Source: Botryllus schlosseri (Eukaryota). Taken from it: 64,000 nucleotides of DNA. The translations under genes and the position numbers were made by a program. Shown in pieces: positions 7,501 to 47,427 of this stretch; the first letter of the stretch is position 1; every line of letters begins with the position of its first letter. The notes beneath the pieces are model-generated. The model was not told the DNA's origin, made no database searches, and was given only the letters and a program-made list of their open reading frames with translations. The stretch is from assembly GCA_051294905.1 (NCBI GenBank), contig CM119380.1, positions 21,886,001 to 21,950,000 on the forward strand. The letters run 5' to 3'.

Positions 7501-8626
7501 TGAATAGTTTCTGTTTATACTAATGCTAACCAGCGATGCTGCTTTAATTAGGATTTTCGTTTTTGTCTACAATTTGAATGCGTAAAATGCCGACTTTATC
7601 GATGTGTATTTCGGCGCTGATGTACCATACAGTTGCCATTCCATCCCGGTCGGCAATTACGAAATAGTCAGCCTCCAACCATTACCAAGCTTACTTTCGC
7701 GTAGCGTCACCGTGTTAATGTTGACATTCGCATCTCGCTAATACGATTTGGCCAATCTCAACACAATTTTGCAGAATGTTGCAATTATTACACTCTCGCG
7801 TATTCAAGTTGAAAGCAAACGCTGACCGCGTCGCCAATAGGAATAATTACGCGTCCTCGCGCACCATCGGAAGAATCCACTTATGTCCTTGAAGCCGGTC
7901 GAATTACCTTCTCGGGTGTCATTGTATTACGCGGGTCGCGATTGTCAACATCGATATGACATATTACTAGCCGGGTATTATAGAAATATCGTGTCACGTG
8001 TGTTGGTACATACCTCGACAACAATGGGCCTGATATTATACGCCAACAGATAGCATTGCTGCCTAAACGCGCGGTTCGCATATCGGTCTTGTTAGGTCGG
8101 AAGGTGCTATAACCGGGGCGATTAATCGTTTGGTAATGCCTTTTGTCGCAGAGTTGGGTATATAATGTGTTGCTTTATGCCGCGTGTCTACCAGTATCGG
8201 CTGGATTACTCTGCAGGGTAGTGCTCTTCTTAGTTGGCTGTATGAGTCTTATTACATTCCGGCTGTTTGCTAATAAGTCCTTTCAGGGTGACTTGAAGTG
8301 GGGTCTTGTTATTCTAGTATCCACTCGAACACCCAATCTGCGCGAAAGTAGCAGGGTGGTCATAGTATCCGCCAATTCCCGACTTCAATTTAGCGTTGCC
8401 GACGGATAGCGCTTCAAGAGATTCAAAATGTTATAAATATACATAGCCAGTGATTTATAACCATCGGAATCACTTGATAAACACGCCAATTTCTTCAGTA
8501 TCGTAGAAACGTGTTTGCTAATATAAGGTCAGGTGACGCGGCGGCAGTAAAGACGTCTCAGTGCAGTCTGCTGATGCAAAGTTCATTATTATAAATATAA
8601 GTTTATGTTGATGGATTGCTGGCATC

Positions 8627-22021: not shown

Positions 22022-22928
22022 ATCATCATTGGTTTATTAGCAATTTTATCAGTTCAATACACCACAAAAAATGCGATACAATGAAAAGACAGGAAGATGT
22101 CGAAGCGACAAGGAGTAGTCTATGGAATCTGACACCCATGGAGGCATGCACACTGAATGAAAGTAAAGAATACGGTATAGAAAAAGAAAGCGACAAGAAA
22201 TAGGGCGGCATGTCATGGGAAGCGAGATCGATAGGTCAGTCGTGGTCCGGTAATCTTGAGGATGGACTGTATTTATCTAGTAGTAATTGCTTGTATTTCG
22301 ACTTGAATGTGGACAGGACATGCTCGTCGACTGTCGGATAACATAACATAACATGGTTGGGTTATATTTTAATCTGAACAAGTCACACACAATGTACAAT
22401 GCGATAAGACACAATGCGATGTCATGAACAGATAGGAGGATGTAGAACGACACGCATCAGTAGCGATCCTTTACTCTAACATCCACCTCGGCCTAGAGTG
22501 CCCGATGTCACAGTTCTTTTTCGATGTTGATCTCTTTGAAGCCGCGGCCCTTTCTACTAGTTCTTTTCCATTCATTGTGAGTGCTTTCTTTCGTCGGGTC
22601 TTTTTCCGGGCTTTTTTGTCGCCGTAAGAACGGCAACGGCAGGGGAAGAGGAGCCCAGATAAACCTCCGGCGGGAATCGAACGCGATTCGCCTGCGTGCT
22701 GGGCGCTTATCGTAACCACTACACTATCTCCCCTGCCGGCGGGATACTGTTCCACACATAAGGTCGGGCATATTTGATAGAGCGATGATCTTTTCGGTCG
22801 ATCATATGATATTTGGACGACGGGGACGCGCGTGTGTTGTACTTGTGCGCTTTTGATTCCGAGGTAAAGAAGTCATTGAAATATTCGGGGCAACGACCGC
22901 AGTGGAACTGATACATAAACTTGACGAT
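22022..22928 (-). mobile_element. 3' fragment of a non-LTR retrotransposon (L2/Crack-like), interrupted by a SINE
   Basis: 22022-22339 plus 22734-22928 are the reverse complement of much of 43975-44504, including KFMYQFHCGRCPEY..HKYNTR..VWNSIP. Confidence 0.85.
22340..22733 (-). mobile_element. tRNA(Val)-like SINE, full length
   Basis: Head GGGGAGATAGTGTAGTGGTTACGATAAGCGCCCAGCACGCAGGCGAATCGCGTTCGATTCC has A and B boxes, followed by a body of about 320 nt and an (ATGTT)n-like tail. Confidence 0.85.
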
Positions 22929-23056
22929 ATAAGAGAGAGAGAGAGAGAGAGTCTTTATTTTCATCCAACCAAAATACATAACACACGGCAGTGATGGTGG
23001 TACAGAAAATATGCTTGCACAGTATTCGGTATTAGATAGGAATGATCGATAAGACA

Positions 23057-23398
23057 GGGGAGATAGTGTAGTGGTTACGATAAGCGCCCAGCACGCAGGC
23101 GTCGGAGGTTTATCTGGGCTCCTCTTCCCCTGCCGTTGCCGTTCTTACGGCGACAAAAAAGCCCGGAAAAAGACCCGACGAAAGAAAGCACTCACAATGA
23201 ATGGTAAAGAACTAGTAGAAAGAGCCTCGGCTTCAAAGAGATCAACATCGAAAAAGAACTGTGACATCGGGCACTCTAGGCCGAGGTGGATGTTAGAGTA
23301 AAGGATCGCTACTGATGCGTGTCGTTCTACATCCTATCTGTTCATGACATCGCATTGTGTCTTATCGCATTGTACATTGTGTGTGACTTGTTCAGATA
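23057..23398 (+). mobile_element. Second copy of the same SINE (B box deleted), running into the gap
   Basis: Near-identical reverse complement of 22340-22733, lacking GAATCGCGTTCGATTCCCGC. Confidence 0.85.
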
Positions 23399-23534
23399 NN
23401 NNNNNNNNNNNNNNNNNNNNNNNNNNNNNNNNNNNNNNNNNNNNNNNNNNNNNNNNNNNNNNNNNNNNNNNNNNNNNNNNNNNNNNNNNNNNNNNNNNNN
23501 NNNNNNNNNNNNNNNNNNNNNNNNNNNNNNNNNN
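23399..23534. other. Assembly gap (Ns)
   Basis: Run of 136 N. Confidence 1.
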
Positions 23535-24699: not shown

Positions 24700-24745
24700 A
24701 AATTAAATTTGATTGGACATTCGCTCTTCGACTTCCGGGTTCACA
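24700..24745 (+). promoter_or_regulatory. Putative CCM2 promoter
   Basis: Reverse CCAAT (GATTGG) and ETS-like ACTTCCGG just upstream of candidate ATGs at 24745/24760. Confidence 0.35.
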
Positions 24746-24787
24746 TGCTCGACACACCCATGCCCGTACCAATTTACCGGGATGGGG

Positions 24788-24812
24788 TCATCATCATCAT
24801 CATCATCATCAT
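24788..24812. repeat. (ATC)n microsatellite
   Basis: About 8 perfect TCA units. Confidence 0.95.
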
Positions 24813-25623
24813 TTGTATTATTATGAATTCGAAATACTACAATAATTCTGATGGTGTGAAGAGGAAGGATGGAGTCTACAACCTGGTGAAGTCAATCAAA
24901 CTCCACCTTGGCCTATAGTGTAAAAAATGGAACGTGTTTGGTTAGAGAGGCATATGCAGTCAATGAGAAATCATATATGCATCATCAAAAATGCGTAGGC
25001 GATATAGAGGCATGCAACAACTCTGGGTATAGGCGAAGTCGGTGTGTAAAAATCGATCCTGTAATCTCAATACGCAGGCTATAGTATTTATCCAGAAGAA
25101 ATTGCTTGTTTAGACTTGAAGGTGGTCATTACTCATTACTATAGGGAGTCCATGATGGCCTGAGCGCTGAAGGGTGTATTTATAGACCAGACCAAATGCC
25201 CATATCAAGGATACCCATTCGATAAGTGTGCGAAGATAATAATTTATTGGGCTCCGTTTTCGTTTTTGTCGTGTTTTGGCCCGTGGAACTTGATATAATA
25301 TACCTGCTAACGCTATAGGCTATAGTTCTATAAACATTAGATTGACATGCTCAAGGTTGTCGAGGAATGATGATAGCTCCTATATTAATGTGTAATGATA
25401 CATGACAGATTTACCATAGCTGGAGTTTATAGAAATGTTTTGGCTTCAATATTTTGATATTCATGGAGATCTTTGTTTTGGAAGTATCAGGGAAGAGAAA
25501 TGGTGATTCTTGTCCATTCTGAAATGGATAATGATAATCACAGGGGCAGCAAGAGGGTAAGTTGAAAAGTCCTAATTGTGTAACTTCTAAATGTTCCAAT
25601 ATTATTTCCTCGTATCGTATCAG

Positions 25624-28600
25624 GGATTATTCAAGTGGATACCAAGTCGAGCTCGAAATTCTCCGCCAAACCGAAGGTCGTCCAGAGTGAAAGACAGTTT
25701 ACCTACCGAGAGGCGCCCTCTGCGTTCTGTACCAGTTGTTGGACCGGATTGCAGAGTGGAACCGGAGAGACTAGTTGCCGAATATGTCGAAAAGGAAGCT
25801 GCGGTAAAAATTATTGTCAGCGTACATTAAAAAAAATTATAGGACTGCTATTCTGATACTAACTTCACTTCTAGGCCACCAAGACATATATTACCATGTA
25901 AAATCTTATTAGTGATAGAGACCTTGGTAAATTATCCGACACTAGGCCAGGCTGTCGTGTCATATACCATTGTATTTGATTACCAGTGAACTCGGCACTT
26001 GGTGAATTCGGCCGGACAAACTCGGCACTTGGTGAACTCGGCACTTGGTGAATTCGGCCATTGGTGAATTCGGCCATTGGTGAACTCGGCCCTCGGGAAA
26101 TTTTGTAATAAAAATGCATTAAATATATATATCAGATAATGAAGAATCACGTGCCGTGGTAGATCGCGTAGCGGTAACGGTCACCATGATTGGTTACTGG
26201 AATGTTTGCCGGTGAACTCGGCACTAATCTTGAGATACCCCAACCCACCTCCAATCCCCCTTTTCCCCAACCGTAATATCCCCCTCTCACAACCCTAATA
26301 TACCCCTATCCCCAACCCTAATCTTGGGATACCCAACCCCGACTTTGACCCTAACCCACCTCCAATCCCCCATTCTCTAACCCCAATCTCCCACTAACTC
26401 CCTACCCCGCCTCTCCCAACCCTAATCTTGGGATACCCTAACCAACCGCCAATCCCCCTTTCCCCAAACCCTAATATCCCCCAACCCTAATATCCCTCTT
26501 TCCCCCAAAACTAACACCCCCTTCCCAACCCTAATATCCCCCTTTCCCCCACCCTAATACCCCCACCCCAACCCTAATATCCGTCTCTCCAAAGGCACAA
26601 AAAAAAAACAATATATTTTGACGTATAAATTTTTGTTCGTGTTCGTGGGAAACATTTATTGGTGATCCTTTAAAACTTCGTTATTACATCAGAGATCCAT
26701 CTTCTCAAAAGTCGTACGTCCGTCCCTCGCCAAGTCAAATCAACACTGAGCCGACCACGCGTGGTCGATATGTGAACGTCGCGTTATCTCCCGCGCTTGC
26801 GCAATCCGTGATCACATGATCTAATCACGACGTGACTGCGTGATCTACATATGCCCTGACCTCCTTACAAGATTGACGAATCACTTGATAATACTATTAT
26901 TAGTTTAATAATTCATATTAATAGCTGTTAATACACTTTAAATTCATATTCATAGTTGTTAATACACTTTATTACAAAATTTCCCGATGGCCGAATTCAC
27001 CAAGTGCCGAGTTTGTCCGGCCAAATTCACCAAGTGCCGAGTTCACTGGCAACCTTGTATTTAATTGCTTCATTGATCATTTGCTACCATCGTTTAATTT
27101 TTCTTCTATTTTTTTTTACTACCGTAACATTTTTTACAGCCAGACTGTTTAGAGTCAAGTGTACCTGTTTGATGCTGGTGTGATCAGACTAGATGACCTT
27201 CACGGTCTTATCGATCATTCCTATCTAATACCGAATGCTGTGCACGCATATTTTCTGTACCACCATCACTGCCGTTTGTTAGGTATTTTGGTTGGATGAA
27301 AATAAAGACTCTCTCTCTCTCTCTCTCTAATCGGTGTCTTGTGAAGGGCTCCACTCATTTTTTATTCAGGCTTCAAAGCCGGTATTGCTGAATCATGTTA
27401 GGATCTTCATCTTTAGACCTATCGACTGTATTACCCTGACAGTGATATTCTGATATTTTCTTTTAGCTGTTCGGTACTGTTCCAAACATTGAGACCAAGT
27501 TTGATGCTACCGACAGAGCTGCCTTATTGAAAATATTAGATGAACAGCAGGTATGTTTGGCATGTATGTTAAGTATAGTGCACTATAGCGCACGCGCCAG
27601 TTTCATGAAAGTATCAGAATTTTTAGGCACTGTTATGCATACCTAGAGGATTGACTGCCCCCATATAAGATGCAGGCTACGTTAGGGTTGTTAAAAAAAC
27701 TTTTTCTTCAGATTTCACTGGCTGCTTGATAAAATTGTTAGGTTTGTTAAAAAGAACGCTGCACACCAACTTTGGCTCAATTCCAACCAGTAGAAGCGAG
27801 GTTCTTGCAGTAGAAAGTTTTCAATTTATCATTAAAACATAGAAAAAAAAATTCAAAATTTTTCTGTCGACCCCATAAAATTGTTAGGCTGTCGGTAGAG
27901 ATGATCCACACCAAATTTGGTTCAATTCCAACCACTAGAAGCGAAGTTATTGCAGTAGAAAAATTTGGATTAGAATAAAATAGTATTTGCGGTGGCTACT
28001 CTTTAATTATTTATTATAAAATCATAGAATTAGAAATTTTTCTACTGCAATAACTTCGCTTCTAGTGGTTGAAATTGAGCCAAATTTGGTGTGCATCTTC
28101 TCTACTGACAGCGTAACAATTTTATGGGATCGACAGAAAAATTTTACAATTTTATTTTTATATTTTTTAATGATAAATTCAGAACTTTCTAAACTGCAAG
28201 AATCTTGCTTCTACTGGTTGAAATTGAGCCAAAGTTGGTATGCAGCGTTTTTTTCACCAATCTAACAATTTTATCAAGTAGCAAGTGAAATCTGAAGGAA
28301 AAGTTTTTTTTTTCAACAGCCCTAATGTACGTCTTATCCCTTATACATAAGAATAACGTTTTTTTTAATACTCCCTTGTACCCCAGCTTTTAACAGCTAT
28401 CCACATACAATGCATGTGGTAGCTTTGTACTCAATTCATAATAAGAACCAGAATACAAAACCTGGGTAATTCGATTGTGAATCGAGTATTGGGCTTCAAG
28501 TCAGTCGAGTATTTGAGTATCACTCGTTATGATGTCATAGCAGTATGAATGTCGCATTTTCTAGCTTTGGCAGTATGCCTGACTGCCTGTAGCACCTACA

Positions 28601-31600
28601 CCCAGCTAACTTTCCTGGCTTAAAGTTCGTCCATTTGTGCAAATTTCATCGGTAAAATCGTTTCAGAATGTTGCATTCTAAATACGCAACGATTTGTTAC
28701 ACGTTTTCAGACATCTCTAACTGTAACCTTGATAGCCTATTTGCTGGCATACACATAACCATGGTAACAAGTGCATTTTTTCCGTCTTCAGGCAGTGGGA
28801 CAGTTAAAAAGCCATCTCTTTCATGATGACGATATTATCATTACGTTTTCTGTACACAATATCAAACTCTTGCGCAGAGACGGTAAGTAGCCTAATTGAT
28901 ATTTGCCGAGTCTTTTGTCAAGCGCGATAACCAATCCTATCCGGTCCAGGTGAAAAACTTATCCAAAGAATCGTTACTCATAAAATCGCCGCTGTAGGCT
29001 ATGTCCGTGACGACCAACAGCACATTGTATTCATCAAATTCGGTAAGAGTAAATATCATTTTGTAACCGTTAATTAAACGTGATTGGTGAGACTTAATGA
29101 CAGCCTTTGATGATTCAGGTTTCGAGGTATGATTATTGTGTTTTCATAAATTTCTGGTAGTGCACCTATTCCTGAGCGTTTGTCATCACCAACTTTGTGT
29201 ATCAGCATGATGAACTCCCCGATGTATGTGTTATGCAATTTTGTCTCTTTGATTAACCGTGATTAAGGACATAGTCAATAAGACATTCATTACTGCAATG
29301 GCCCATCCTCAAGTACCAATACATTTACAAGAAATTATAGCTCCTGATGTTGTTTTTACCACCCATGATATTGCTGGTTTGCATTGCGGTATATATTATG
29401 AAACTTGATACCATGTAATATACTATAGTCTGGTACATTTTATTATATATTTATGCATATACCTTTCATTCATTTTACAGCTTCAGAGACAAACCCAAAG
29501 ATGTGCAACTTGACTTTACTCAATTGCAAGAGTAAGGTAGGTCTATGGAAATTCTAACTTGAAATTCTAACTGAATCAAACAGGCTGTATTCAACTTTGA
29601 GCGATGATATTCAGTGACAGTAAATGTAGTTGATAGTGCAATCTTCGAAGTATGTTATTCATCAAGATTTTTGAAATTAGTGATGGATAAGAGGAATATG
29701 ATTTTAGCTTGAATCACAGAAGATTGATGGTATATACATTTTATAGCACTAGTACACTTATCACTTATCTATGAGTCAATTGTTATTTTATTGCTTCTCT
29801 AAGAATTCCTTCACTATGTTCTAGCCCTTTGATGAGGCTTTTTGCCCATTCAGGTGCAACGAAGCATGTCGAAATGGGGATATTTATAAGAGGTTTAACC
29901 AGTAAACAATACTGTAGTAATGGTGGATGTTTCGTCACAGTCTTGTGGCTATATAAAGAAGCGTTTCTATATTCTCCAGCCATATCCTATTTCGTCGGCG
30001 TACCTGAACAAGCTAGTGTGCTGCCCTGTTTTCCAAATCGTATGACAAACACTTATGATAGGCTGCCTGTTAAAAACGTTTTGTCAAGTTTGTTGCAATT
30101 GATATACTTTTGAATCCTTGAAATAAATTGCACTTGTGACATAATATGACAACATGGATAAATTTAATTACAACAAACAAAAATCCATGGTCATCTGTTT
30201 GTCTTGGTATTTAATAGAATCATCTTTAGTGGGACTGGGTAATCTTGCCCTTGCCTGGATGTATGTGTCACACTTTTAGGCTAATAATCAAGCGGTACAC
30301 AACTGTTGAGCAAACGTTTTCCGTTTGTAGGACGCCGCAGAAGAAGTTTGCTCCTTGGCCCGCCAAATATTCCAGCTGGTGTACACTGACTCGGCGATTG
30401 ACTTTCTTGACAAATCCATCATGGTCGGTGCTATTACTCCAAAAAATCATTCTTACAGTACCGGTGAGATTTTACGTCTTTTGTATACTGGTAGTTGGCA
30501 GTATACAGTATCTTGGTGTTCTTTTGTTTCCTGTTTTCTTTTGCCCTTTTATTTAATTGAAAGTCGATATATATATATAGTTGGCAGCGTTGAATCAGAA
30601 AGTGCTCTTGATTTTTATCACTTTTCTTTTTGACCGACTTCCTGGACTAGTTGCATTTCAACTTGCACAGTTTTGCAGCTGGATCACTGTATGCCTTTTT
30701 GGATTTTCCCCGAGTCCATCAAGATTGTATATATATATATTCTTTTATCACTACATCCATCGCAAGGATACATATATTATAACTCGAAGACCTTTCAGGT
30801 GCTGTTATCAAGAGTTATCGGCGCACCAAAGCTATATGAAATTATTAGGCAAAATATGACGCTCGGTTATAGGCGCCGAAAAGTCTTGCAATAAATGTAT
30901 TCTCGCAATCTATGTTTTGATGAAAGCAGCATTCAAGTACTGTACCATAAACCAGCTATCTAACATTCATATTTGCTATCAGAACTTTGGTACCGGCACA
31001 CCTATCCCTAATACACTTGTAGGGTCTCGATCGAGTAATCTTAAAACTGTTTGCGCCATCGTGAAACAGTTGCTCCCTGTCTTGCAAATCGCTGCCGTTT
31101 CGTCAGCCTTTGATGCTCGATTGTTCATTTATTTGTTTATTTTTTAGACGATTCTGAAAAAAGAGATCCTGTCACTGTAATAACTGACGACAACACCGAA
31201 GAGTAAGTGCTCCTAGTCTCAAAACTTGAAGTTCTGCACCTCGAAGAGTGTCTGTGAAAATTGAAGTTTTCTGCTCATTTAGGCAAAGACGTAAAAGCAC
31301 AGAGTCACTACCTACCTCAAACAGCGCAAACAGACACGGAACTTCCAATACAGACGTTCGATTTCGGCCCAGCACCGGTCAACTGTACGCGCTGCCGAAA
31401 TTACTATGAACGTTCCCCAATTACATTGCACGCATGATTTGCAGCTCCGAGATGCGTCCTAGGTCCAGCTCGACCTTGCCGATCATGTCGCGAACGCACC
31501 GGCGTTCCGGTAGCAGCGGTTCTTCCGGCACCAACCCGGTTCCGTCCTCGAGCTCGATTCATTTGAGAAGTCCGACAAGCTCCGCGAAACGCACAGGGGC

Positions 31601-34600
31601 GCAAGCGGAGTTCCAAATCCCGGACTATCTGGCTGTTGTAAGTTTGCTGTAGGCTATGACCGGGGACTTGACATGAATATCTGTATGGGGTTTCTTGTCA
31701 GCAAAATTTGCAACCGAAGGAAGATGTGGAAACGACCAAGTATGGTAAAGTAGTCGTAAAGTAGAAGTAAGTGTTCTAGGCTTAGTTTTGCCTGAAATTA
31801 AATCTGGTAATTAGATGTATCCTTAAATCAAAACCACATGAGTTTGAGTATGCATTGCAACTATTTGAGTACCGTAATTTTCCATGTATAATGCACAAAA
31901 TTTTCACGATTTTTTGCCCTAAAATAGGGGGGTGCGTATTATACATGGGTACAACAAGCCTTGAAAAAAATCTCCCTCGATAAAAAACTTGAAATCACAC
32001 CTATCATGTTTGTTTCCAATCGCGCATCACTTTCAGCCAGCGCGCGTAGTAATTCGTATTATAGAGTGTAACGCTGCCAATTACTGGGAAGCGTGTTGCC
32101 AATTAACAAGAGTCACGCGATCTCCTGCTGAGTTGGTTTGCCATTTGTACTCGAGCGAAATTAGATCACTAATAGACACTCGCGCGCGGCAATTCTCGCC
32201 AATTCATCGCGTCAACGACAGGCCCGAACAATCGCATATGCAATTTATACATATACAAGAGGCCATGTGCGCTAGATATAATCGCTTGCGTAATCACTAA
32301 TCAGTCGCATCTCCAACAGACCTGTTGCGCATGACATAACCGTTAGCCTAGGCGCAATCGCATCTGTAATAGGCATCGGGCGAAAGATGTCGGTTCGTTG
32401 GCCTAAACTAACTCGCAGCCGGCCTCACAGGCTTTGGCTGCTATCTACTATCGTTTAGAGACAATACCGTTAATTGTATAATGATTAGCTATCGCATCTG
32501 TAAAAGGTCTCCTAGTGCTCAAGATGTCGTGTCGCTCGCCTGAACTATCGCGCCGCTTGCCTCGCAGGCTTTGGCTGCTATCTACTATCGTTTAAAGACA
32601 ATCCCGCTAATTGTCTAATGATTAGCGATCGTTGTGTAATGATTGTTCAAGAGTGACATCGCAAAACAGAATGACATCGTGTACGAAATCGGAACTATTC
32701 CTGTACTGAAATGCAGGGTGCGTACTATACATGGGTACAGGCTTTTTCCCAGAATTTACATGCTATTTAGGGGTGCGTATTATACATGGGGGCGTACTAT
32801 ACTTGGAAAATTACGGTACTTCTAAAAAGTAGAAATAGGCTACTTTGTCACCGAACATCCCTGTTCTCAATCCTATATCTACCTTAACCGACTGGTATTA
32901 ATGCCCAACGTAGCAGTGTCCAATCTTGATGTTTCTTTTGGCGCTGCTTCGCGCTTTTCATTCATCGAGTGATCTTTCTATAGGATTTTTTGTAAAGTTA
33001 GGAACAGCGGCACACGTGACGAGGTTAGAGTTGGTCAGAGTAGTCTACGTTTCTGCTCGAATAGAAGTAATGTCGCAAATTTCTACTCGGGTACAAGTAG
33101 AAGTAGTAATCTAAAATGATAACCACCTTAGGAAGTAGTGAAAGTAAGCATAACTTTCTTGAGAACTTCAAAAAAAGGGAGGTACTTTGCTACTGAGTTC
33201 CACTGCCAACACTTTGAAACTATCGGCAGCCCGGATTCGAGCCGCGGTCTCTCGTGCCAATGGCGGTGGTACTAGCCCTGACCGTCCGCGTCAACTCTTT
33301 AGTCCTTGTTTGTAAAGCTTGTGCTGAGGACCTGCGCCATTTCAGCTTCAAAAGGAATTTACCCGCAATGAACTGCGCGAGTTCGCCGACCTGTTGCAGC
33401 AGTTTCGAATGGGAACGCTGACTATACGCGATCTGTCGGTTAAACTCTGGGAGCTGTACACCGACACCCGGAAGCATTTGCTGCTTGGTGGGTTTGCCTT
33501 CTTCGATTTCACCAGGTTGCTTTATGAAGTTGCCAGTGAATCTGGTACTTAGTGTATTCGACCAGGTTGTAACTAAGACGCAAGGTTCCGAGTCACAAGT
33601 CAATCTCATTTTTATAGTTTTGACTCGAGTCAAGTCCGAGTCCAAGTCTGCTAATAAAGGGTCGAGTCTGAATCAAAGTGTTTTGACTCGAGTCCGAGTC
33701 ATTATGCTCACAGGTCAGTTTTCAGTTCAATTTGCTTCAACCCACTTTTTCAACTCTGCTCAAATGATAGAATGGCTCGGCATTCATAATATTGTAATTT
33801 TCCTCAGTCTTAGCAGTTTCTGGCCAATTTTTTTAGGATCAGGACTGATAGACGAGGCGCCCGTAGTGTGGTGCCTTTACTATTCTTCGGAGTTACAATG
33901 AAATGTCTGTCTTGGCCATCCTAGTCTCGAGTCATGTGATTTGGTTCGACTCGTGCACAATGACTCAGTACAAGTCGAGTCAATACAAAAATTGACTCAA
34001 GTCAGGTCGTTTTACGTATTCGAAAAAATCACCATCCTGGAATTCGGCACTTGAATTTGACATCAGAATTACAACTAACATAATGATGCGATGCATTGGA
34101 TGCATCGATATTGCATTAATGAATTCGAAATTGAATGTTTCACTTGACATGAGCTTGAGTTGTGATAGTACGGCACTTGGTGAATTTGGAATTAGAAATG
34201 CAATAACTAAATTATAACTATATACAAAATTCATCAATATTGTAGCACTAAATTTAAAAATGAATGATTCGTTGAATATGAGCGTGAATTGCGATATACA
34301 GCACTTGGTGAATTTTGCAAGTTGAATTTAGCGATAGAAATAGAATAGCCATTATTATTATTATCATGAAAGCGTTTCATCAATATCTAATTTCAAAATG
34401 AATATGAGTGTGAATTGTGTATCAATGTGTTCGTGTTAGGATTAGCTGTCAAGTGCCGAATTGACGGATAACCCCTAACGGTGATTTTTCTACGTCAGGC
34501 ATGCGGCACTTCATCCCAAACCCGACCGACTTGTCATACTTTGACCAATTTTTGAAAGACCATCAAGCCGATCAGAGCTCTTCGGATTCTGCCTCGTACG

Positions 34601-37600
34601 GGTGCGTTTGAGATTAGGTTACGCGTGTTTGGCTATGGGTAACGCGTTTGAATTTTTAAGATGGTGGACAGAGGCGCCGCGTGTCTCGAGCTCGGCGCAA
34701 TCGGAAGACGGCAGCGTTTCTACCGGGGCACATGTAACCGGTAAGGCCCACGCTTTCACTAGTATCTGCCGTTAATATTTTCCCTGGTGTTCTGCCTTGG
34801 TTTGTGACGTATAGTTGAGAAAAAAGGTGGTTAGTTTTTTAATGATAACATGGCGTCACTGATACTCCGTGACATAGTAAGAACATATAATTTCACAATA
34901 TCCTAGTCGATTTGCACATCCTGTCGACTCAGACAGGTGGGTGTGGGGCTAGATTTAGATTTTTGTTGTTGATTGATTGTATATAGGTTAGGTATTCCGG
35001 GGGAATAAGCCTTAATCCTACGAATTGCAGCTAGCCCTCTCTTATGTTTACAATTGAATAGTATATTCATATTAAATGAACCCGAAGATTTTCGGCTGGC
35101 ACTCGTCAGGGGTAATCGTCAGCAACTAGTAGAGAATTGGAAAGAACATTGTATATCGACAATCGTATCACGAAATATGACGTCACCGGCATGAAATGAA
35201 ATCTCAAATAAGAGAGCGTTCAATGTACTATTTTAAAATGGTACACGTCACACGAACTCATTTTGTAGACAAAGCTTGGGCTGATGTATTTTCATAAAGG
35301 TCGTCCCCAAGGCACACAGGTCAAAGTGTGAGCGGTGCCTCCCAATGAGGCGAAATTGGTCGTCTCGATAATTTTTTTCACAAGCGAGATTGCCCTACAG
35401 ATGTTCACCAATGGCAGAATTTATGGCCTTTGAATGTCGCTTAGCCTCAAGCTTGAGCGGATGAGTTAGGGGTGAGCTTTTCACCGGGCCAAGCTTTGCC
35501 TACAAAAGGAGTTCGTGTACCATCTTATTTGAGATCTCATTTCATGCTGGTGACATAATATTTCGTGACACGATTGTTGATATACAATGTTCTTTCCAAT
35601 TCTCTACTAGTTACTGATGATTATCCCTGACGAGTGTCAGCCAAAAATATTCGTGTTCATTTCAATATGAATATACTATTCAAATGTATATTGAAGCTCT
35701 GCACCTCCAAGAAGCTCTTAACTTTACATAAACTGAGTTCTCGTTGAAGCGAATCAATAGTGATTCTTTTGTTGCAAGGCTGCTTGGTGTTCATATGGTA
35801 GTAATGTAATCTATTAGTTTCTTCATATTCTTTGTCGTCGTTCCGAGATATCGGTGGAACAATATCAACTACAAAACAATCAAGCCATGTATTATAGCCT
35901 ATTGTTATTTGTTAACGAAAATATCAATGGGCATTGTGTGGGAGACGAGCCACCTCCGTCATTCTTGATGAGAATGGCCAACTTTTTCCAATTACGAACG
36001 AGTGATATGGAATCGCGTCAAAGCAAACGGCAAGCATCGGTTGTGTTATAGACCTCTCGTCGAGCGAATCCGAACACACTCTAACTCCTCCTGTCCTGCC
36101 GTACAAAGACGGCGGGATATTTGACAATTTTGTGATGAGCTCCTATGCCAGACCGAGGCCAACGAAATCCGGTAAGGGCTGCTTGGCACGTCCACTAACA
36201 CCCGCGTGTCTTGCGAGATGTCCCAAAAATAACTTGATTCATGCCTATCCTTTTGTGCTCTACTCTTGCTATGTCTCTTGGCGCAATCTACATACTGGTT
36301 ACTGGGACGATTTGAGTGGAGTGTGCATTGTAACGATGGATTAGAGTAGGTTCGATTTCTACGAGTATGGTAAAAAAAGAGTCGCCTTCACAAACAGGGT
36401 AATATTCATTTAATCAACGGCAAATGTAGTTTCAATACTACGGTCGAACCATCGAAACCTTGGCTGTCCGTGGTTCAGCATCGCTAAAACACGTCGCACA
36501 GGGCTACGAATGTTCATGCAACGACATTTTTGTCCAGTAGGGGTCGACCCTCAAAATGGTAAAAAGCACTACGAAATATCTGGGTTTAGAAATAAGAAAT
36601 TTATTTTGAATGGTGTGTAACTGGCAACATTTTGATTTCGGTCAGATATATATTTGAACTTTTCAAGATATTATTGGTGTTGTTTTTTCATAATACGTGG
36701 TACTCGAATACTTGACTCAATTCGGAATCATCTAGTTACCAGTACTCCATTTTGCCCAGCCCTCTTGGTTAGAAACCACAGAGTGTGCATCTTGTAATAG
36801 CTGTTTTTTGATGGTGGTTAAATTTCTTCTTCCATGTTGGCCGTTGGGTGCCCACACCCATAACAGCTCAATGCTCTATTTTCCGTGTTTCCGTGCTCTA
36901 CAGATTAATTTGAATCTTTCGAAGCATTTTTCATCTGCTATCGGGCATTCTTTCGCAAGGCTAGCCCTTAACGCTGTTTGCCTCGATTTTTCAGCGAACG
37001 GAACACCACCAAGACGGGCTTTTCACCTTATTGACTCGCCGTTCGTTGATGAGCCATCTTATTCCGCACTTCATGTAACTTCGGTGGCTGCTGTTCCATC
37101 AGGTTTTGGAGATACGTCCAACGATTCAGGTAGGCAAGATTGACTGCCGCTCTGTCGGTAGTGCGGGTGAGGTGGTCAGTAACAAAGTGGAGTACTAGAG
37201 TAGGTTTAGCCTACTTGTACTACTTACTCAAGTGGGTATGTTTTCGGCAGAACTACCTACCATTTTGATAGTGTATACTTATGCTTGAATTGAGCAGATA
37301 TTTATGACGTTACTTGTAGTTGAGTGGCAAATCTGACTACTTCGGCCACCACTGGTGCCGTTTTAAGCGATTGTTCTTTTTATTCAGATTCAGAGACGAA
37401 TGTAAGCAGGACTTCAAGCGCAAAGATGGTATGTTGACAATGTTGGTCTAACAGGCGTCCACATACTTCGGCAAACCGAGTGACTGCCTCAAAGTCTGTC
37501 TCATCCCTAATACGACGATAACACCACTTACAACTTCATTACCACGTGTTTGAGTATGTGAGAACCATGCTGACGGCTCTCAACTTGTCCTGGCGATACA

Positions 37601-38356
37601 AAATTTTATCTGTAGTAGTCATCATCCAGATGTTTCCAAAAGTTATAATTGGGGCGATTTTTTGTCATGTCAAAAAAAAGGTCAAAATTGTAGCGTTAGG
37701 TCAAAAAATTACCGTAATACGTGGGGTAGGGCCAGATTCGTACAGACAGTTCGAACCAGAAATGAAGATAAGTACTACAATTCTAACATTATATGGGAAA
37801 ACACCTAATTTGCATACGTTGGGTCAAAATCAAGTTTTTTGAGGTAAAAAAAAGTCAAAATGTTGATTTTTAGGTCAAAATCTTCCGTTTTTTAGGTCAA
37901 AAAAATCGCCCTAGTTATAACATTTGTGATGACACCAGGGTTACCATATTTTGGACATATCCTCCTAAAAGAGGACGTATGTTAACCCTATATGACACCC
38001 ATTCATGTTCCATTGACTGAATCAGGATTACCGGGTCCAATGAAAATAACTCGTTAGTGGCAATCCTAGATTGAAAGATCAACCTCTCACCGACCGCTTA
38101 CAATATCCAAATGCTAGTCGAGTAGCAGACCGTTTGTGTATTCTAATCCTAGACGCCATCAAAGGACGACACAAACGTGCGACAGCGAAGGCAAGGTAAA
38201 GAAAGGCGGAAATCAGAGCTGTCTTCGAACGAGTCCAAAAGGCCATCATCAGAACACTTCGCAATGCCACCTCTTCAGGATTTTGATGTCAGGCAACAAA
38301 AGGAGCATAGAAAAAAGAAGAAACACAAGAGGGACTCGATTACTGTCGCATTATGA
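25624..38356 (+). CDS. CCM2: CCM2/malcavernin orthologue (PTB domain, harmonin-homology domain, long C-terminal tail); first coding exon uncertain (24745-24765 or 24823-24885)
   Basis: Exons 25624-25803, 27467-27550, 28792-28882, 28950-29042, 29481-29536, 30331-30463, 31148-31202, 31283-31384, 31445-31637, 33346-33487, 34499-34601, 34661-34740, 36052-36171, 36995-37129, 37388-37428, 38153-38356, all phase-consistent. Peptides [96 protein letters not shown] match recalled human CCM2 (TERRPLHTV, HDIAAVSYVRDD, VYTESTIDFLDRAI, LRPFIP). Confidence 0.93.
25978..27054. mobile_element. Foldback DNA transposon with long repeat-built TIRs and an internal CCCTAA-rich array
   Basis: Inverted arms of (GTGAACTCGGCACTTG)n, perfect 8-bp TSD TTGTATTT, internal degenerate CCAACCCTAAT repeats at 26230-26580. 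Confidence 0.88.
27063..27328 (+). mobile_element. Retroposon 3' end with AATAAA and (CT)n tail
   Basis: An inverted copy lies at 22933-23056 plus 23535-23670, where the SINE and gap interrupt it. Confidence 0.75.
27683..28324. mobile_element. hAT-type palindromic MITE (family A)
   Basis: TAGGGTTGTT..AACAGCCCTA ends, long internal palindrome, degenerate TSD (GGCTACGT/ATGTACGT). Confidence 0.8.
31870..32818. mobile_element. Family C TA-flanked element, second copy in opposite orientation
   Basis: TACCGTAATTTTCC / GGAAAATTACGGTA ends, internal sequence is the reverse complement of 16127-16967. Confidence 0.85.
33563..33982. mobile_element. GACTCGAGTC-rich hAT-type MITE (family D)
   Basis: Colinear with 39426-39965. 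A short copy at 54287-54405 has TIRs and a TSD. Confidence 0.75.
35051..35686. mobile_element. TA-flanked foldback MITE with arms of about 220 bp
   Basis: 35051-35285 is the inverted copy of 35482-35686 (CAATTGAATAGTATATTCATATT / AATATGAATATACTATTCAAATG). Confidence 0.85.
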
Positions 38357-38658
38357 TGTTATTGAAGATACTCCGTCCGCATCGTGCATGCTACAAACGA
38401 ATTGACCCACTAACCACGTAGCCTGACTAGAATACTTTTTTTTCAACTAGAATGGCGCTTCCCATGTTCCTGGTAACTATCTAATTCAAGGATGTGCTGC
38501 TAGTACCAGTCAACAAGAAACCATTCTATGATATTTTTATGTATTGGTTCATGTGTTACTATATTTAATATTTCGAGCCGCTATAGAATAGCTCTTTGGT
38601 GCTCTATTATACTACTTTCTGCATGTCCGACAATGCCTTTTCTATCCAACAAGTTCTT

Positions 38659-40540
38659 TCAAACTGCATTTGTTCCTTGTACGGATGCGGCGGGCAGCAC
38701 CTTGGATTGAGGGTTATGGCTAATGGCAGTTTCAAGTATGTGATTGAAGCGGCTGCACACTTCTTGCGCCATCTCCTGCAAAACGAATCGGGGTCATGCC
38801 GCTGTTAAGATCGCCCGTCTGTGATGCGCTCATGCTCACCTTATTTCCGCATTGGTAGGCGTGGATGTCATATGGTCCATCAGGAGACGCAGTTGCCCGG
38901 ATGCATTTTACTGCCAGCATGGTATTACCGAATATTCCGTCGTCAAATATGACCAACCTCTCTATCAGGTGGATAGGTACACGATATATCACTGGCTGAT
39001 GTGAAGAAATGTATTGAAAGCAGTTATGTGACATGAACAAGTAATATCTTACACCATTATTGCATTTAGTAAGCTTAATCCCGTGGACAGTGAGCGACAT
39101 GATCGCCTCTTCGTTCACATACAGGGGAAGTTCATTTTCTTGCTGGTAAAAATCAAATGTAAGTAAAAGGTGCATGACGCAAATAACTTTCAGTGCCTTA
39201 CCTGAGCTATGTCGATCAGGTTGATCACATCCAACGGCCCGCTTCCGAGACCGCATATATTCTCAATGCAGCCGACAATTCGAACACGAAAATCTGCCTC
39301 ATTTGCCTCGGGAGGCAAAACTAAAATGGTAACAGACTTATTGCAAGTGAAGTATTCATGATTGTAATGGTTACGATTGTGGCTGGTCACGTAATGATGC
39401 CAGATAGGCTAGCTAGTATGTAGGCCAGGGTTGTAACCAAGTCGCAAGGTTTCAAGTCACAAGTCAATCTCACTTTTATAGTTTTGACTCGAGTCATTTT
39501 CAATTCACCACCGAGTCAAGTCCGACTACAAGTCAACGAACAGAGGCTCGAGTCTGAGTCATGGTATTATGACTCGAGTTGAGTCCAAGTCATTGTGTTG
39601 ACTGACCAGTTTCCAGTTTAAGTCTTGCTAAATCCACTTTCTGTAATTCTGTTTGGTGATATCGAATGGCTCGCATTCTTAATATACTAATTTTCCTCAT
39701 TTTTAGCAGTTTCTGGTCGCGTTTTCAAGTACCAGTACCAATAGACGAAATCCCAATAGTGTGGTTTCTTAACTATTCCTCGAAATTACAATGAAATGTC
39801 GGTGTTGGCCGTCTGCGTCTCGAGTCATATGACTTGGTTCGAGTCCAAGTCGAGTCAATACACAGATTGACTCGAGTCGAGTCATTTCCGTATTTTGACA
39901 AAATGACTCGAGTCAAGTCGAGTCATCATAAAATCGTGACTCGAGTCATCACCATTTCGTCACTGTGGATCGAGTATCTTATGAAATCAAAATTTTGTAA
40001 GATTTTCTTTCGGCCTTATTTTGGCCACAATGTGACAAACGTAATCGTGGCCAAGATAACGCCGAAAGAAAATGAGAATCTTACAATAACTTGATTTTTT
40101 CATATATGTATAAAATGGATATAAAAATCACGACATTGCAATACGGTGGAGATACATTTGTAGGAACCAACTACTAAAGTAGGCCTTGTCATTCATCCGT
40201 TAATTCAGATTTTAGTTAGCAAGTTAGGCTGAACGCGAAAGGATGTTGACAGAATACTATATCATGCTAATGCAAACGCACCTGAACTTTGAATTGATGA
40301 TAAACTACCACCTCTCCCTGAATTTGCTTCGGGGCTTGATAGGGTGCTAGACTTGGATAAACCGTCTATCGAGTCCAAGTCTAGTGACTAAAGAAAATAG
40401 GTGTTGAGTCTTAGTAATAATACATTAGGCCCAAATCCATATTCCCCACGAACCTTGCTCTTCGAGCTTCCTTGACTTCTTAGAGATAGCTCGCTACCGT
40501 CAGCACTAAGCTGTGCCACCTTGGTTTGTCGTCGTAACAT
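38659..40540 (-). CDS. ITGB1BP1: Integrin beta-1-binding protein 1 (ICAP1) orthologue, 224 aa, Ser-rich N-terminus plus PTB domain
   Basis: Exons 40540-40454, 40387-40282, 39320-39202, 39142-39053, 38995-38840, 38775-38659 (675 nt, all GT-AG, phases consistent). MLRRQTK..SKSK|SLDLDSIDGLSKSST, ADFRVRIVGCIE..GPLDVINLIDIAQ|QENELP, IERLVIFDDGIFGNTMLAVK, AYQCGNK|EMAQEVC match recalled human ICAP1 (AEFRIKYVGAIE, GPLDLINYIDVAQQDGKLP, RMVCYDDGLG). Confidence 0.93.
39426..39965. mobile_element. Family D MITE in an ICAP1 intron
   Basis: Starts CAGGGTTGTAACCAAGTC, many GACTCGAGTC motifs. Confidence 0.75.
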
Positions 40541-41460: not shown

Positions 41461-41913
41461 CACTACAAAAAAAAATTAGACAATTTGGTCTCAAAATTAG
41501 ACAAATTTGGTCTCAAATTTAAGAAATGAGGTTGATTTGGTCTCATTTTACCACCCACTCACCATAAATGCTATTTTCGACTCAGACAACCATATATATA
41601 TTGATCTGAATGGTATACGTGAGTAGTAAGTGGCATGTACCTTGATAACTATATCTAGTGAATACCTTGTAAACTTAGTACAGGATCATCTCAACACTGC
41701 AATTTCTGGTCTCTCTCATCCTTCCCCTCCTCCGCTCAGACCCCTAACATTGAAAAGGATGCCCCCAAGGCACTGCTACCATTTTCGATCAATTTCTGGC
41801 TTACTTTTGAGACATAAAGTACTTGGTAAGACTAATTTGTCTTTAAGACTTTTTCTGCTAAAAAATCGATTTGAGACATTGAGACCAAACTTGTCTAATT
41901 TTTTTTTGTAGTG
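41461..41913. mobile_element. CACTA/EnSpm-type MITE, copy 1
   Basis: Ends CACTACAAAAAAAAATTAGACAA / TTGTCTAATTTTTTTTTGTAGTG, TA on both sides, 453 bp. Confidence 0.88.
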
Positions 41914-43560: not shown

Positions 43561-43784
43561 GAGCGGGAGACGATACGCGGCAATTCGAGTTCGCACGCTC
43601 GCGTCATCCGCTGGAGGTCTCTCGCATAATCCCGCGGTTCCCGCCGTCCGCGAGCGGGCTCGTAGTTTGGGGCCGGGCGAACACAATGGCACGGGCACTC
43701 AAAAATGAACAGAGTAACAATTTTAAAGATTCTAATCGTGTAGTGATACATGATTTCTTAGCGTACTGAAATTAGACGATCCTG

Positions 43785-44504
43785 TCGAAGTTACATTATG
43801 GCATCCACTGTTGGGGGGCTGCCAGTAAAACTGCACTCAAGCCACTGCAGAAACTACAGCATAAAGTGCTCCGAATCATAGCTAGGGCCCCAAAGGGGCC
43901 TGGCTGCTCATCCAATAAGTCGCTGCTGAAGAGATTCGGCGTCCTAAACATAGAAGATATGCGGAAACTAGAAATCGCCAAGTTTATGTATCAGTTTCAC
44001 TGCGGTCGTTGCCCCGAATATCTCAGTGACTTCTTTACCTCTGAATCAAAAGCGCACAAGTACAACACACGCGCGTCCACGTCGTCCAAATATCATATGA
44101 TCGACCGAAAAGATCATCGCTCCATCAAATATGCCGGACCTGATGTGTGGAACAGTATCCCGCCGGCCATCCGACAGTCGACGAGCATGTCCACATTCAA
44201 GTCGAAATACAAGCAATTACTACTAAATAAATACAGTCCATCCTCAAGATTACCGGACCACGACTGACCTATCGATCTCGCTTCCCATGACATGCCGCCC
44301 TATTTCTTGTCGCTTTCTTTTTCTATACTGTATTCTTTACTTTCATTCAGTGTGCATGCCTCCTCTTTACTACGCCTAGGCCAAGGTGGGTGTCCGATTC
44401 CATTGACAAATCCAAGTCGCTTCGACATCTTCCTGTCTATTCATTGTATCGCATTTTTTGTGGTGTATTGAACTGATAAAATTGCTAATAAACCAATGAT
44501 GATG
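43785..44504 (+). mobile_element. 5'-truncated non-LTR retrotransposon (L2/Crack-like ORF2 C-terminus plus 3' UTR)
   Basis: SKLHYGIHCWGAASKTALKPLQKLQHKVLRII..HKYNTR..GPDVWNSIPPAIRQSTSMSTFKSKYK, stop at 44267, tail AATAAACCAATGATGATG. The same tail occurs at 61-83. Confidence 0.88.
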
Positions 44505-45644: not shown

Positions 45645-46097
45645 CACTACAAAAAAAAATTAGACAATTTGGTCTCAAAATTAGACAAATTTGGTCTCAA
45701 ATTTAAGAAATGAGGTTGATTTGGTCTCATTTTACCACCCACTCACCATAAATGCTATTTTCGACTCAGACAACCATATATATATTGATCTGAATGGTAT
45801 ACGTGAGTAGTAAGTGGCATGTACCTTGATAACTATATCTAGTGAATACCTTGTAAACTTAGTACAGGATCATCTCAACACTGCAATTTCTGGTCTCTCT
45901 CATCCTTCCCCTCCTCCGCTCAGACCCCTAACATTGAAAAGGATGCCCCCAAGGCACTGCTACCATTTTCGATCAATTTCTGGCTTACTTTTGAGACATA
46001 AAGTACTTGGTAAGACTAATTTGTCTTTAAGACTTTTTCTGCTAAAAAATCGATTTGAGACATTGAGACCAAACTTGTCTAATTTTTTTTTGTAGTG
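45645..46097. mobile_element. CACTA/EnSpm-type MITE, copy 2 (apparently identical to copy 1)
   Basis: Same 453-bp length, ends and orientation. The ORF track gives identical 93-aa translations at 41630 and 45814. Confidence 0.88.
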
Positions 46098-47427
46098 TAT
46101 GTATCTATAGCGCACTGTGATGAACTTTCGCTACATTTGTTATAACTGCGGAATGCAAAAGATTCTGGCACGAGATATTGAGCATTATACATTACTGTTG
46201 ATTGTATACCAACCACCGGCACCGAGTGTGTGTGGTATGTGGTATAGGCCTATACTGTTTATAGTGGTTGGTGATATCTGCCTGTCTATAGTTGATTCCT
46301 GATTATGGAGGATTGTTGTGTGCAACCATATACCATATATACGATACCGCACTTGATACGTGAAACCGAAGCTGCATTAGAGCATATAGACTGTTATGAT
46401 ATGAATATGTAAGAATACTGTTGTGTGATTTGTCTTGAGGCTGTGTAGATATTCATGTTTGTGGTAGAGGTGGATGGCAACGTCACACAATTTTATGTTG
46501 AATTACATAATTACTATACTATGCAAGAAACCCATCTGTCACACGCTATTCATTGCGGACAACCCTGTTTACAGTCTGTTTATACAGTATATAATGCTGG
46601 AATAGCCATTACATGAATTTTGTAGAATTTGGCTAACGCAACCTCGTGTATCGAAAACCACATGCAGACCATGTTGATATGTAATTTTCCTGTGACAATG
46701 AGACTTAATCTGCCTCAATTAATTTTCCTTGCATCATATTTCCCTCTAATCATGTCGCTAAAGACTTCAGCAATAAATTTTGCCATCGTAGCTATACCAG
46801 ATAAATTATTTCTGCAATTTGTTAGATCACATGAATTTCCCCATAATTAATATTTGGAAATGCCTAATTAAGAATAAATCGACAATGTGTCGTTGCTTAC
46901 CGTAATTATTCGAGTATAATCATTAATGTTGCGTCACATTGTGAGCGACTTGTAGTTGGAATCGAAGTAGCTTGTGTCTATTTTTTCAAATATTGAGATC
47001 CTTCTTTCAAACTCATAGAAAATCAAGATTTTTTGGTAAAATTTTCATTTTATTCTGTCATATCTTGACCTTGTTTATGTTTATCACATTGTTTCTAAGT
47101 TAATCACGACCAAAGATATAGCTGGAAGAAAATGAGAACTAATTAGTTTGCTAAATGTGTAAAATGGACGTAAGTTCGCCTACTGTATAATTCGACATCG
47201 AAAATATACCTGCTATAGTATCAACAGTTGGCCTGAACCGGCAGCTCTATAGTTTTATGAAAATAGCGGATTAAATAATGAATGAAATGTATACCCCTTT
47301 AGTTCCGAAAAATTAATTACTTAATACAGAAAAACTGCGACTGTTTGATTTTTTACCAGTGTATTTCTTAGGCTTAATTAGGCTTAGGTCAAGTTGCTCT
47401 TCTCCAATTGCAACTTGTGACTGCACA

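Follow-up and report, generated by a model that had tools for sequence, protein, structure and literature searches.

The 64-kb stretch of the Botryllus schlosseri genome analyzed here (contig CM119380.1, positions 21,886,001 to 21,950,000; referred to below as the window) contains the genes CCM2, on the forward strand, and ICAP1 (ITGB1BP1), on the reverse strand, arranged tail to tail. Based on conserved synteny, the sister relation of their PTB domains and shared introns, the two genes are very probably an ancient local duplicate pair that has been adjacent since before the sponge-bilaterian split. Most simply, the genes would already have been neighbors by then, one inversion would have followed on the bilaterian stem, and linkage would have been lost several times since, once on the line leading to human. 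ICAP1-CCM2 is a well-supported addition to a known class, the conserved paralogous microsyntenic pairs, and not a new kind of system.

The two proteins are studied in the field as separate partners of KRIT1 in cerebral cavernous malformation. Vertebrate ICAP1 binds the first NPxY motif of KRIT1 and the beta1-integrin tail, and vertebrate CCM2 binds KRIT1's NPxF motifs via its PTB domain and MEKK3 via its harmonin-homology domain (PMC13013565). By analogy with this vertebrate literature, the products of both window genes may bind KRIT1 through NPxY/F motifs. If the two genes arose as sisters by one local duplication before the sponge-bilaterian split, there would be an evolutionary reason why neighboring NPxY/F motifs on one scaffold are read by related domains. 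Ascidians, Saccoglossus, Owenia and Ephydatia would then provide invertebrate models for adaptor co-regulation at a compact locus, and the pair would be a clear, functionally interpretable addition to the short list of adjacencies surviving since early animals.

Adjacency of ICAP1 and CCM2 across animals

An earlier note on this DNA, made from its letters, had described a complete CCM2 (+) and a complete ICAP1 (-) with stop codons only 302 bp apart. The gene models rebuilt in this study bear out both genes as well as the exact distance. CCM2 occupies 24823..38356 (+) with 16 exons encoding 608 amino acids (aa), every junction being GT-AG and in frame, and ICAP1 occupies 38659..40540 (-) with six exons, likewise joined at GT-AG junctions, encoding 224 aa; the stop-to-stop spacer is 38357..38658. 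The harmonin-homology domain family CCM2_C (PF16545) was matched on the frame 33328-33549 with 32.6 bits, above its cut-off of 27.3, a further 14.9 bits coming from the exon after it, and exons 3-7 are colinear with the PTB domains of scallop, acoel and fish CCM2/CCM2L. In blastp, window CCM2 matched the 'CCM2 homolog' of Argopecten at 4e-32 across 327 aa. The ICAP1 family (PF10480, ICAP-1_inte_bdg) was matched on the frame 38735-39262 with 29.2 bits against a cut-off of 25, the preceding exon scoring 16.9 bits. At the protein level, window ICAP1 shows 79% identity with one from a Logan transcript and 64% with the 'integrin beta-1-binding protein 1-like' of Styela clava (E 1e-84). Together with the tree described below, these matches assign the window to a stolidobranch ascidian.

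For the synteny survey, orthologues were obtained by an exhaustive ICAP1 profile search, with names taken from clusters, and their genomic places were read with 10-kb flanks. The sample comprised 12 non-vertebrate genomes, counting the window and including two sponges. ICAP1 and CCM2 were adjacent in eight of them, belonging to Chordata (three ascidians), Hemichordata, Echinodermata, Annelida, Mollusca and Porifera. The orientation was convergent in the seven bilaterian genomes, which represent five phyla, and tandem in the demosponge. In the ascidian Styela clava, ICAP1 (+) is followed by a CCM2_C gene (-) across a spacer of 2.7 kb, and the convergent pair of the ascidian Clavelina lepadiformis has a spacer of 471 bp. 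Convergent pairs were also found in the hemichordate Saccoglossus kowalevskii (2.9 kb), the crinoid Anneissia japonica (3.6 kb), the annelid Owenia fusiformis (7.2 kb) and a bivalve, the scallop Argopecten irradians (6.6 kb). The last locus was found from the CCM2 side, via CCM2 isoform X1 (isoform X2 gave transcript contigs only), and its ICAP1 exons were confirmed. In the demosponge Ephydatia muelleri, ICAP1 (+) is followed by CCM2 (+), 237 bp apart, and the second gene was verified as CCM2 by the presence of both PTB and harmonin-homology exons. The earlier note had suggested that the adjacency might be ancestral; this reading is supported, since the linkage recurs in further ascidians and in hemichordate, crinoid, annelid and bivalve genomes, and with the demosponge it reaches further back than was proposed.

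By a rough estimate, two named genes would be adjacent by chance with a probability of ~1e-4 per genome (assuming ~15,000 genes), and the adjacency was seen in eight genomes. That it arose independently in several lineages, or is an accident of this ascidian, is highly improbable: the same partners recur in the same convergent orientation in all those bilaterian genomes, and they are paralogues with shared introns, as local duplication predicts, the differing orientation in the sponge being the one point in favor of separate origins. Still more improbable is a false adjacency produced by an assembly misjoin at 36-39 kb, a concern raised in the earlier note. The sole run of N in the window lies at 23399-23534, leaving the pair itself free of such runs and the whole of 24-41 kb gap-free; the last exon of CCM2 (38153-38356) splices in frame and ends in a C-terminus conserved among ascidians; and in Styela and Clavelina, each assembled independently, the genes are arranged likewise. 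A misjoin is regarded as excluded on these grounds.

Sister relation of the PTB domains and shared introns

Sequence comparison supports ICAP1 and CCM2 as paralogues whose PTB domains are each other's closest relatives. Profiles of 20 ICAP1 proteins and seven CCM2 PTB domains, aligned with hhalign, matched with a probability of 99.4% (E 1e-21, 142 columns). Searched against all PDB sequences, the CCM2-PTB profile found CCM2 (human CCM2 4WJ7 at 7.8e-43), then ICAP1 (4e-8), and nothing further up to E=10. The ICAP1 profile found ICAP1 first (human chain, 3e-58) and CCM2 second (4.6e-15), followed by GULP1 (2.4e-8), ANKS1B, ARH and X11. These Dab-like PTB adaptors (GULP1, ARH/LDLRAP1, ANKS1B, X11) are of the same fold class and match the ICAP1 profile more weakly, but they fall well below CCM2 on it and gave no match to the CCM2 profile even at E<=10. 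Among 1.84 billion protein representatives, 83 matched the ICAP1 profile. In the 82 that were scanned, PF10480 was found at E<=0.001 in 75, CCM2_C was matched by three CCM2-type proteins (two at E<=0.001, and P0066 weakly at 0.0034), and family-specific domains of other PTB adaptor families were found in none. Moreover, the PTB domain of scallop CCM2 scored 42 bits with the Pfam ICAP-1 model versus 24 bits with the generic PID model.

In the unrooted maximum-likelihood tree, the CCM2 PTB domains split from ICAP1 at 100/99, and since sponge sequences sit on both sides of this branch, the duplication predates the sponge-bilaterian split. Both window proteins fell into the clades expected from the family assignments of the earlier note. 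Window ICAP1 is sister to that of Styela with support of 100/99, and the tree broadly tracks animal phylogeny; the PTB domain of window CCM2 is placed within the CCM2 clade (100/99), where fish CCM2L groups with it.

For the intron map, nine ICAP1 proteins and scallop CCM2 were placed exactly on their loci, and the window models and that of Ephydatia CCM2 were added; in the latter the PTB exons were read by hand and the 3' half lies outside the model. A phase-0 intron at column 168 (after ...ID.AQ / ...LDEQQ) is present in all nine ICAP1 genes mapped, from sponge to ascidian, and in all three CCM2 genes. A second phase-0 intron at column 257 (four residues before ...EVC of the last helix) is present in the three CCM2 genes and in eight of the nine ICAP1 genes, being absent in Owenia, and a third is shared by Sycon ICAP1 and all three CCM2 genes. 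A fourth shared intron (G|P after ...IK.......) occupies an identical place in every ICAP1 gene as well as in Ephydatia CCM2. As a result, each of the four PTB introns in Sycon ICAP1 (columns 138, 168, 203 and 257), all of them in phase 0, has a coinciding intron in Ephydatia CCM2. Assuming uniform placement over ~400 coding positions, the probability of four exact coincidences was estimated to be far below 1e-5. CCM2 has an extra, specific phase-1 intron that is conserved from Ephydatia to the window. The structure of ICAP1 is also conserved from sponge to ascidian, and the five introns of the window gene agree in position and phase with those of Styela, Clavelina, Saccoglossus, Anneissia and Asterias. 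The alternative of the earlier note, that the adjacency is a relic of the duplication that created the pair, is well matched by the reciprocally closest PTB domains, the shared intron positions and phases, and the sponge genes still standing head to tail.

Several points weigh against an origin by local duplication before the sponge-bilaterian split. Adjacency within 10 kb is missing in four of the 12 genomes: there was no CCM2, unannotated CCM2 included, within 10 kb of ICAP1 in Asterias, Lineus and Sycon, and no ICAP1 within 10 kb of CCM2 in the acoel Symsagittifera. The pre-bilaterian part of the linkage comes from Ephydatia, one of the two sponges sampled being linked and the other not, and the survey was without cnidarian, placozoan, ctenophore or amphioxus loci. 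The fourth shared intron is displaced from the ICAP1 position by 3 nt in scallop CCM2 and by 5 nt in window CCM2, and the shared introns might be older than the ICAP1-CCM2 duplication and common to other PTB families. In the language-model features of the ESM Atlas, scallop CCM2 was slightly closer to the PID1 and Dab1 clusters (0.80) than to ICAP1 (0.76), all values being under the 0.9 reliability line. Finally, an ICAP1-like protein of a choanoflagellate lies at the base of the ICAP1 side of the tree and cannot date the duplication because the tree is unrooted. This protein, from the transcriptome of Diaphanoeca grandis (P0064), is a 184-aa PTB protein with a PF10480 match of 35.8 bits, and this PTB type is therefore older than animals.

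One match of the ICAP1 profile, P0039 (3921 aa, 'Titin, partial', Eumeta japonica), in which 19 stretches were matched at profile positions ~49-110, is probably an artefact of repeats or low complexity; all analyses excluded it.

Proposed history and persistence of the pair

Under an ancient local duplication, an ancestral intron-bearing gene for a PTB adaptor would have given rise to a second copy beside it before sponges parted from bilaterians. One of the two would have remained a small PTB-only protein, ICAP1, and the other would have gained the harmonin-homology domain and become CCM2. The head-to-tail order, as in fresh tandem duplicates, would have been retained in Ephydatia, and one gene would then have been inverted, presumably on the bilaterian stem, to give the convergent 3'-3' arrangement. 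The convergent order would have been kept in the annelid, bivalve, crinoid, hemichordate and ascidians, with later separation in vertebrates, starfish, nemertean, calcareous sponge and acoel.

Why the pair has persisted may be explained in two ways, to which we give roughly equal weight. It is plausible, although somewhat short of an even chance, that selection holds the pair together: common cis-regulatory DNA, a single chromatin domain, or 3' ends that are coupled or overlap would balance the expression of the two KRIT1 adaptors, and breaks between the genes would be harmful. Ascidian genomes are heavily rearranged, and the pair survives in them with very short spacers (302 bp in the window and 471 bp in Clavelina). 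The outer neighbors vary by phylum (TFIIS in both ambulacrarians, NUP153 in the window, PIH1 in the demosponge, and a gene resembling TTC39 in Owenia), so that the pair has outlasted its surroundings; this turnover around a pair that stayed also speaks for selection. The spacer of the window, moreover, must contain both 3' untranslated regions (UTRs) or their overlap. A candidate poly(A) signal of ICAP1 (ATTAAA, - strand) is at 38569, 90 nt past the ICAP1 stop, but for CCM2 no AATAAA or ATTAAA was found on the + strand before 38800, and because of this the two 3' UTRs may abut or overlap, as coupled 3' ends would have it. On the other hand, convergent gene pairs have no common promoter, the orientation in the sponge is unlike that in bilaterians, no conservation of the spacer was detected when the ascidians were compared, and several lineages, as well as vertebrates, lost the linkage yet kept the genes. 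In Irimia et al. 2012 (PMC3514665), conserved pairs are put down mostly to cis-regulatory constraint, which favors selection here too, and gene orientation was tested as a predictor of coregulation in such pairs.

The pair could equally be ancestral but neutral, a reading that we also consider plausible without its reaching an even chance: two small genes with a short spacer make a small target for breakpoints and could still be unseparated in many lineages whose genomes rearrange slowly. Independent losses of the linkage number at least four or five, vertebrates counted, the spacers range from 0.24 to 7.2 kb without conserved sequence, and the orientation changed at least once, all of which would be expected of neutral inertia. 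Its retention in eight genomes of six phyla, three ascidians among them, amid differing neighbors is nevertheless above the expectation for an average pair, and only a few hundred conserved pairs survive across metazoans (PMC3514665).

A bolder version of the constraint reading should be taken as tentative and rather doubtful. It holds that ICAP1 and CCM2 are a selectively kept two-gene unit from before the sponge-bilaterian split, kept in proportion by regulatory DNA in common or by 3' ends that are coupled and may overlap, that the row of NPxY/F motifs in KRIT1 may have co-evolved with it, and that vertebrates may have escaped only by whole-genome duplication and reciprocal loss.

The nearest known systems are the conserved ancestral microsyntenic pairs of PMC3514665. 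ICAP1-CCM2 resembles them as neighbors kept across several phyla, and in being paralogous, as are the 110 paralogous groups reported in that paper. It differs in that it is not named in the text of the paper, is broken in human, and has products that bind one common partner in vertebrates. Since the pair is broken in human, human-anchored microsynteny surveys would miss it. The earlier note was aware of no description of this linkage, and in agreement with this, no paper tying CCM2 to ITGB1BP1 by synteny, paralogy or duplication was found by full-text search, although genome-wide microsynteny tables (e.g., the supplements of PMC3514665) may contain the pair. In the searchable reviews and structural papers on cerebral cavernous malformation, CCM2L is given as the only paralogue of CCM2 and no link to ICAP1 is mentioned.

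Gene models and surroundings of the pair

The genes of the window are rich in introns, and its G+C content is ~40-45%. Word-indexed searches found four tunicate ICAP1 proteins. When CCM2 exons from Styela and the window served as seeds, the matches were acoel-like CCM2 and a single fish CCM2L, with no tunicate CCM2 protein among them, for which reason CCM2 was modeled manually, guided by splice logic and by tblastn to the Styela and Clavelina loci.

The encoded CCM2 has an N-terminal PTB domain, a harmonin-homology domain, a long Ser/Thr-rich tail and a basic C-terminus. The combination of PTB and harmonin-homology domains is that of vertebrate CCM2 and CCM2L, from which the window gene differs in probably being a single, pre-duplication counterpart of both. 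The long tail and the basic ...EHRKKKKHK... end distinguish ascidian CCM2 from that of other invertebrates, the lengths being 608 aa in the window, 697 aa in Styela and 727 aa in Clavelina versus 388-416 aa in other invertebrates. Clear counterparts of exons 2-5, 7 and 10-12 were found in the Styela and/or Clavelina loci.

The start of CCM2 at 24745, as given in the earlier note, is the less likely of two candidates. The in-frame ATG at that position reads through a poly-Ile stretch, which is due to an (ATC)8 microsatellite at 24783-24806, just 5' of the likely start codon, and ATG 24823 (MNSKYYNNSDGVKRK) is the more likely start, being a better fit to the N-terminus of Clavelina (MVGFVKYYEMEDDGRRSKK). 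Exon 1 (24823..24885) is followed by exon 2 (25624..25803; ...ERRPLRSVP...EYVEKEAA), which ends on the phase-0 intron common to sponge CCM2, scallop CCM2 and Sycon ICAP1. PTB sequence is carried by exon 3 (27467..27550), which ends after ...LDEQQ on the phase-0 intron common to every ICAP1 mapped, and exon 4 (28792..28882), the phase-1 donor of which is 5 nt before the ICAP1 intron position. Exon 5 (28950..29042) ends at the CCM2-specific phase-1 intron, and exon 6 (30218..30264), also of the PTB domain, has an uncertain acceptor (30218 or 30230) and a weak donor, GTGTCA. Exon 7 (30331..30463) starts at the phase-0 intron shared with ICAP1, encodes the C-terminal PTB helix and is 89% identical to the Styela exon.

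Exon 8 (31148..31202) was modeled by hand, and exon 9 (31445..31637) encodes a Ser-rich linker. The harmonin-homology domain is divided between exon 10 (33346..33487), which carries the PF16545 match, and exon 11 (34499..34601; alternative donor 34595). Exon 12 (34661..34740; WWTEAPRV...) is similar to WWAQAPRV of Styela and KWWDQPPE of Clavelina. The tail is encoded by exon 13 (36052..36171), placed by splice logic and a weak likeness to a Styela segment, exon 14 (36995..37129; NGTPPRRAF...), which resembles NGTPATSGT... of Styela, and exon 15 (37325..37428; alternative donor 37401), the least certain exon. The shakiest parts of the model are exons 13-15, in the tail, and the exon 6 acceptor. 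The last exon, 16, with its stop TGA at 38354-38356, is fixed by the C-terminus (...EHRKKKKHK...L*) common to the three ascidians. An alternative last exon in the frame 38118-38402, with a weak Styela match, was dropped, as the conserved C-terminus sits in the frame 38153-38353.

Repeats were also observed within CCM2. Intron 2 contains repeated units (25900-27150), the translated motif of which reads on either strand. The intron also has a tandem repeat rich in proline (PNPNIPLSP-like frames, 26140-26560), the GC skew of which is strongly negative. EF..SPSAEF units resembling those of intron 2 recur in intron 10 (~34.0-34.4 kb). In Symsagittifera, CCM2 is one intronless exon of 506 aa (L009 10001-11521), and one NCBI model joins it to a SUN-domain protein (846 aa).

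ICAP1 was modeled directly from the sequence, from ATG 40540 to the stop TGA at 38661-38659. Exon 1 (40454..40540) opens with MLRRQTKVAQLSADGSELSL and is followed by exon 2 (40282..40387). The PTB domain starts in exon 3 (39202..39320), which ends with ...LIDIAQ on the shared phase-0 intron, continues through exons 4 (39053..39142) and 5 (38840..38995), and closes with the C-terminal helix EMAQEVCSRFNHILETAIS in exon 6 (38659..38775). A Ser-rich N-terminus and one PTB domain of PF10480 are also the architecture of vertebrate ICAP1 (PDB 4DX8/4DX9/4JIF); the vertebrate protein differs in that binding to beta1 integrin and KRIT1 is known for it, and the ascidian protein is known from sequence.

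Beyond ICAP1, a NUP153-like gene (47400-64000, +) stands head to head with it, ~6.9 kb off. It starts with MADNPGMGGGKIRPRR near 47.43 kb, has a RanBP2-type zinc-finger motif at ~55.3 kb and FG repeats at 62.6-64 kb, and gave a weak match to Pfam Nup153 over 52624-52986 (E 2.7e-4). In the nemertean Lineus (L004 14496-21869), Nup153 is directly 3' of ICAP1, in the place taken by CCM2 elsewhere. As the window flank exons (1-24 kb and 41-64 kb) all lacked a match at E<1e-4 among the loci retrieved, the comparison of this ICAP1-NUP153 link with Lineus is drawn from annotation and the weak Pfam match. In the sponge Sycon, TPR, another nuclear-basket nucleoporin, is tail to tail with ICAP1, 358 bp off (L006 19614-29256); with NUP153 in the window and Lineus, genes of the nuclear basket recur next to ICAP1, which is odd.

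A gene for TFIIS (TCEA) is head to head with ICAP1 in Saccoglossus (L002 1-9500) and Anneissia (L012 358-6840), forming a three-gene block TFIIS-ICAP1-CCM2 in Ambulacraria. We take human CCM2 and ITGB1BP1 to be unlinked, and we assume that human ITGB1BP1 (2p25), CCM2L (20q11), NUP153 (6p22) and TCEA1-3 (8q11, 20q13, 1p36) belong to one known four-fold paralogy region, outside of which CCM2 (7p13) presumably lies. This region would match the TFIIS-ICAP1-CCM2 and ICAP1-NUP153 neighborhoods, but CCM2 at 7p13 does not fit. TFIIS-ICAP1-CCM2-NUP153 would be a marker locus for how the vertebrate genome duplications dismantled ancestral neighborhoods.

Between ICAP1 and the NUP153-like gene, two identical 93-aa frames (41630-41908 and 45814-46092), ~4.2 kb apart, bound DNA richer in G+C and have the look of terminal repeats of a mobile element inserted there. 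Between them lies a frame resembling the tail of a reverse transcriptase (43776-44264), with a near copy at 22722-23144 (-). Upstream of CCM2, a stop-free frame of 970 aa (8612-11521, +) lies where the G+C content is raised and both GC and AT skew are strongly positive. It had no match in Pfam and may form one large coding exon of another gene.

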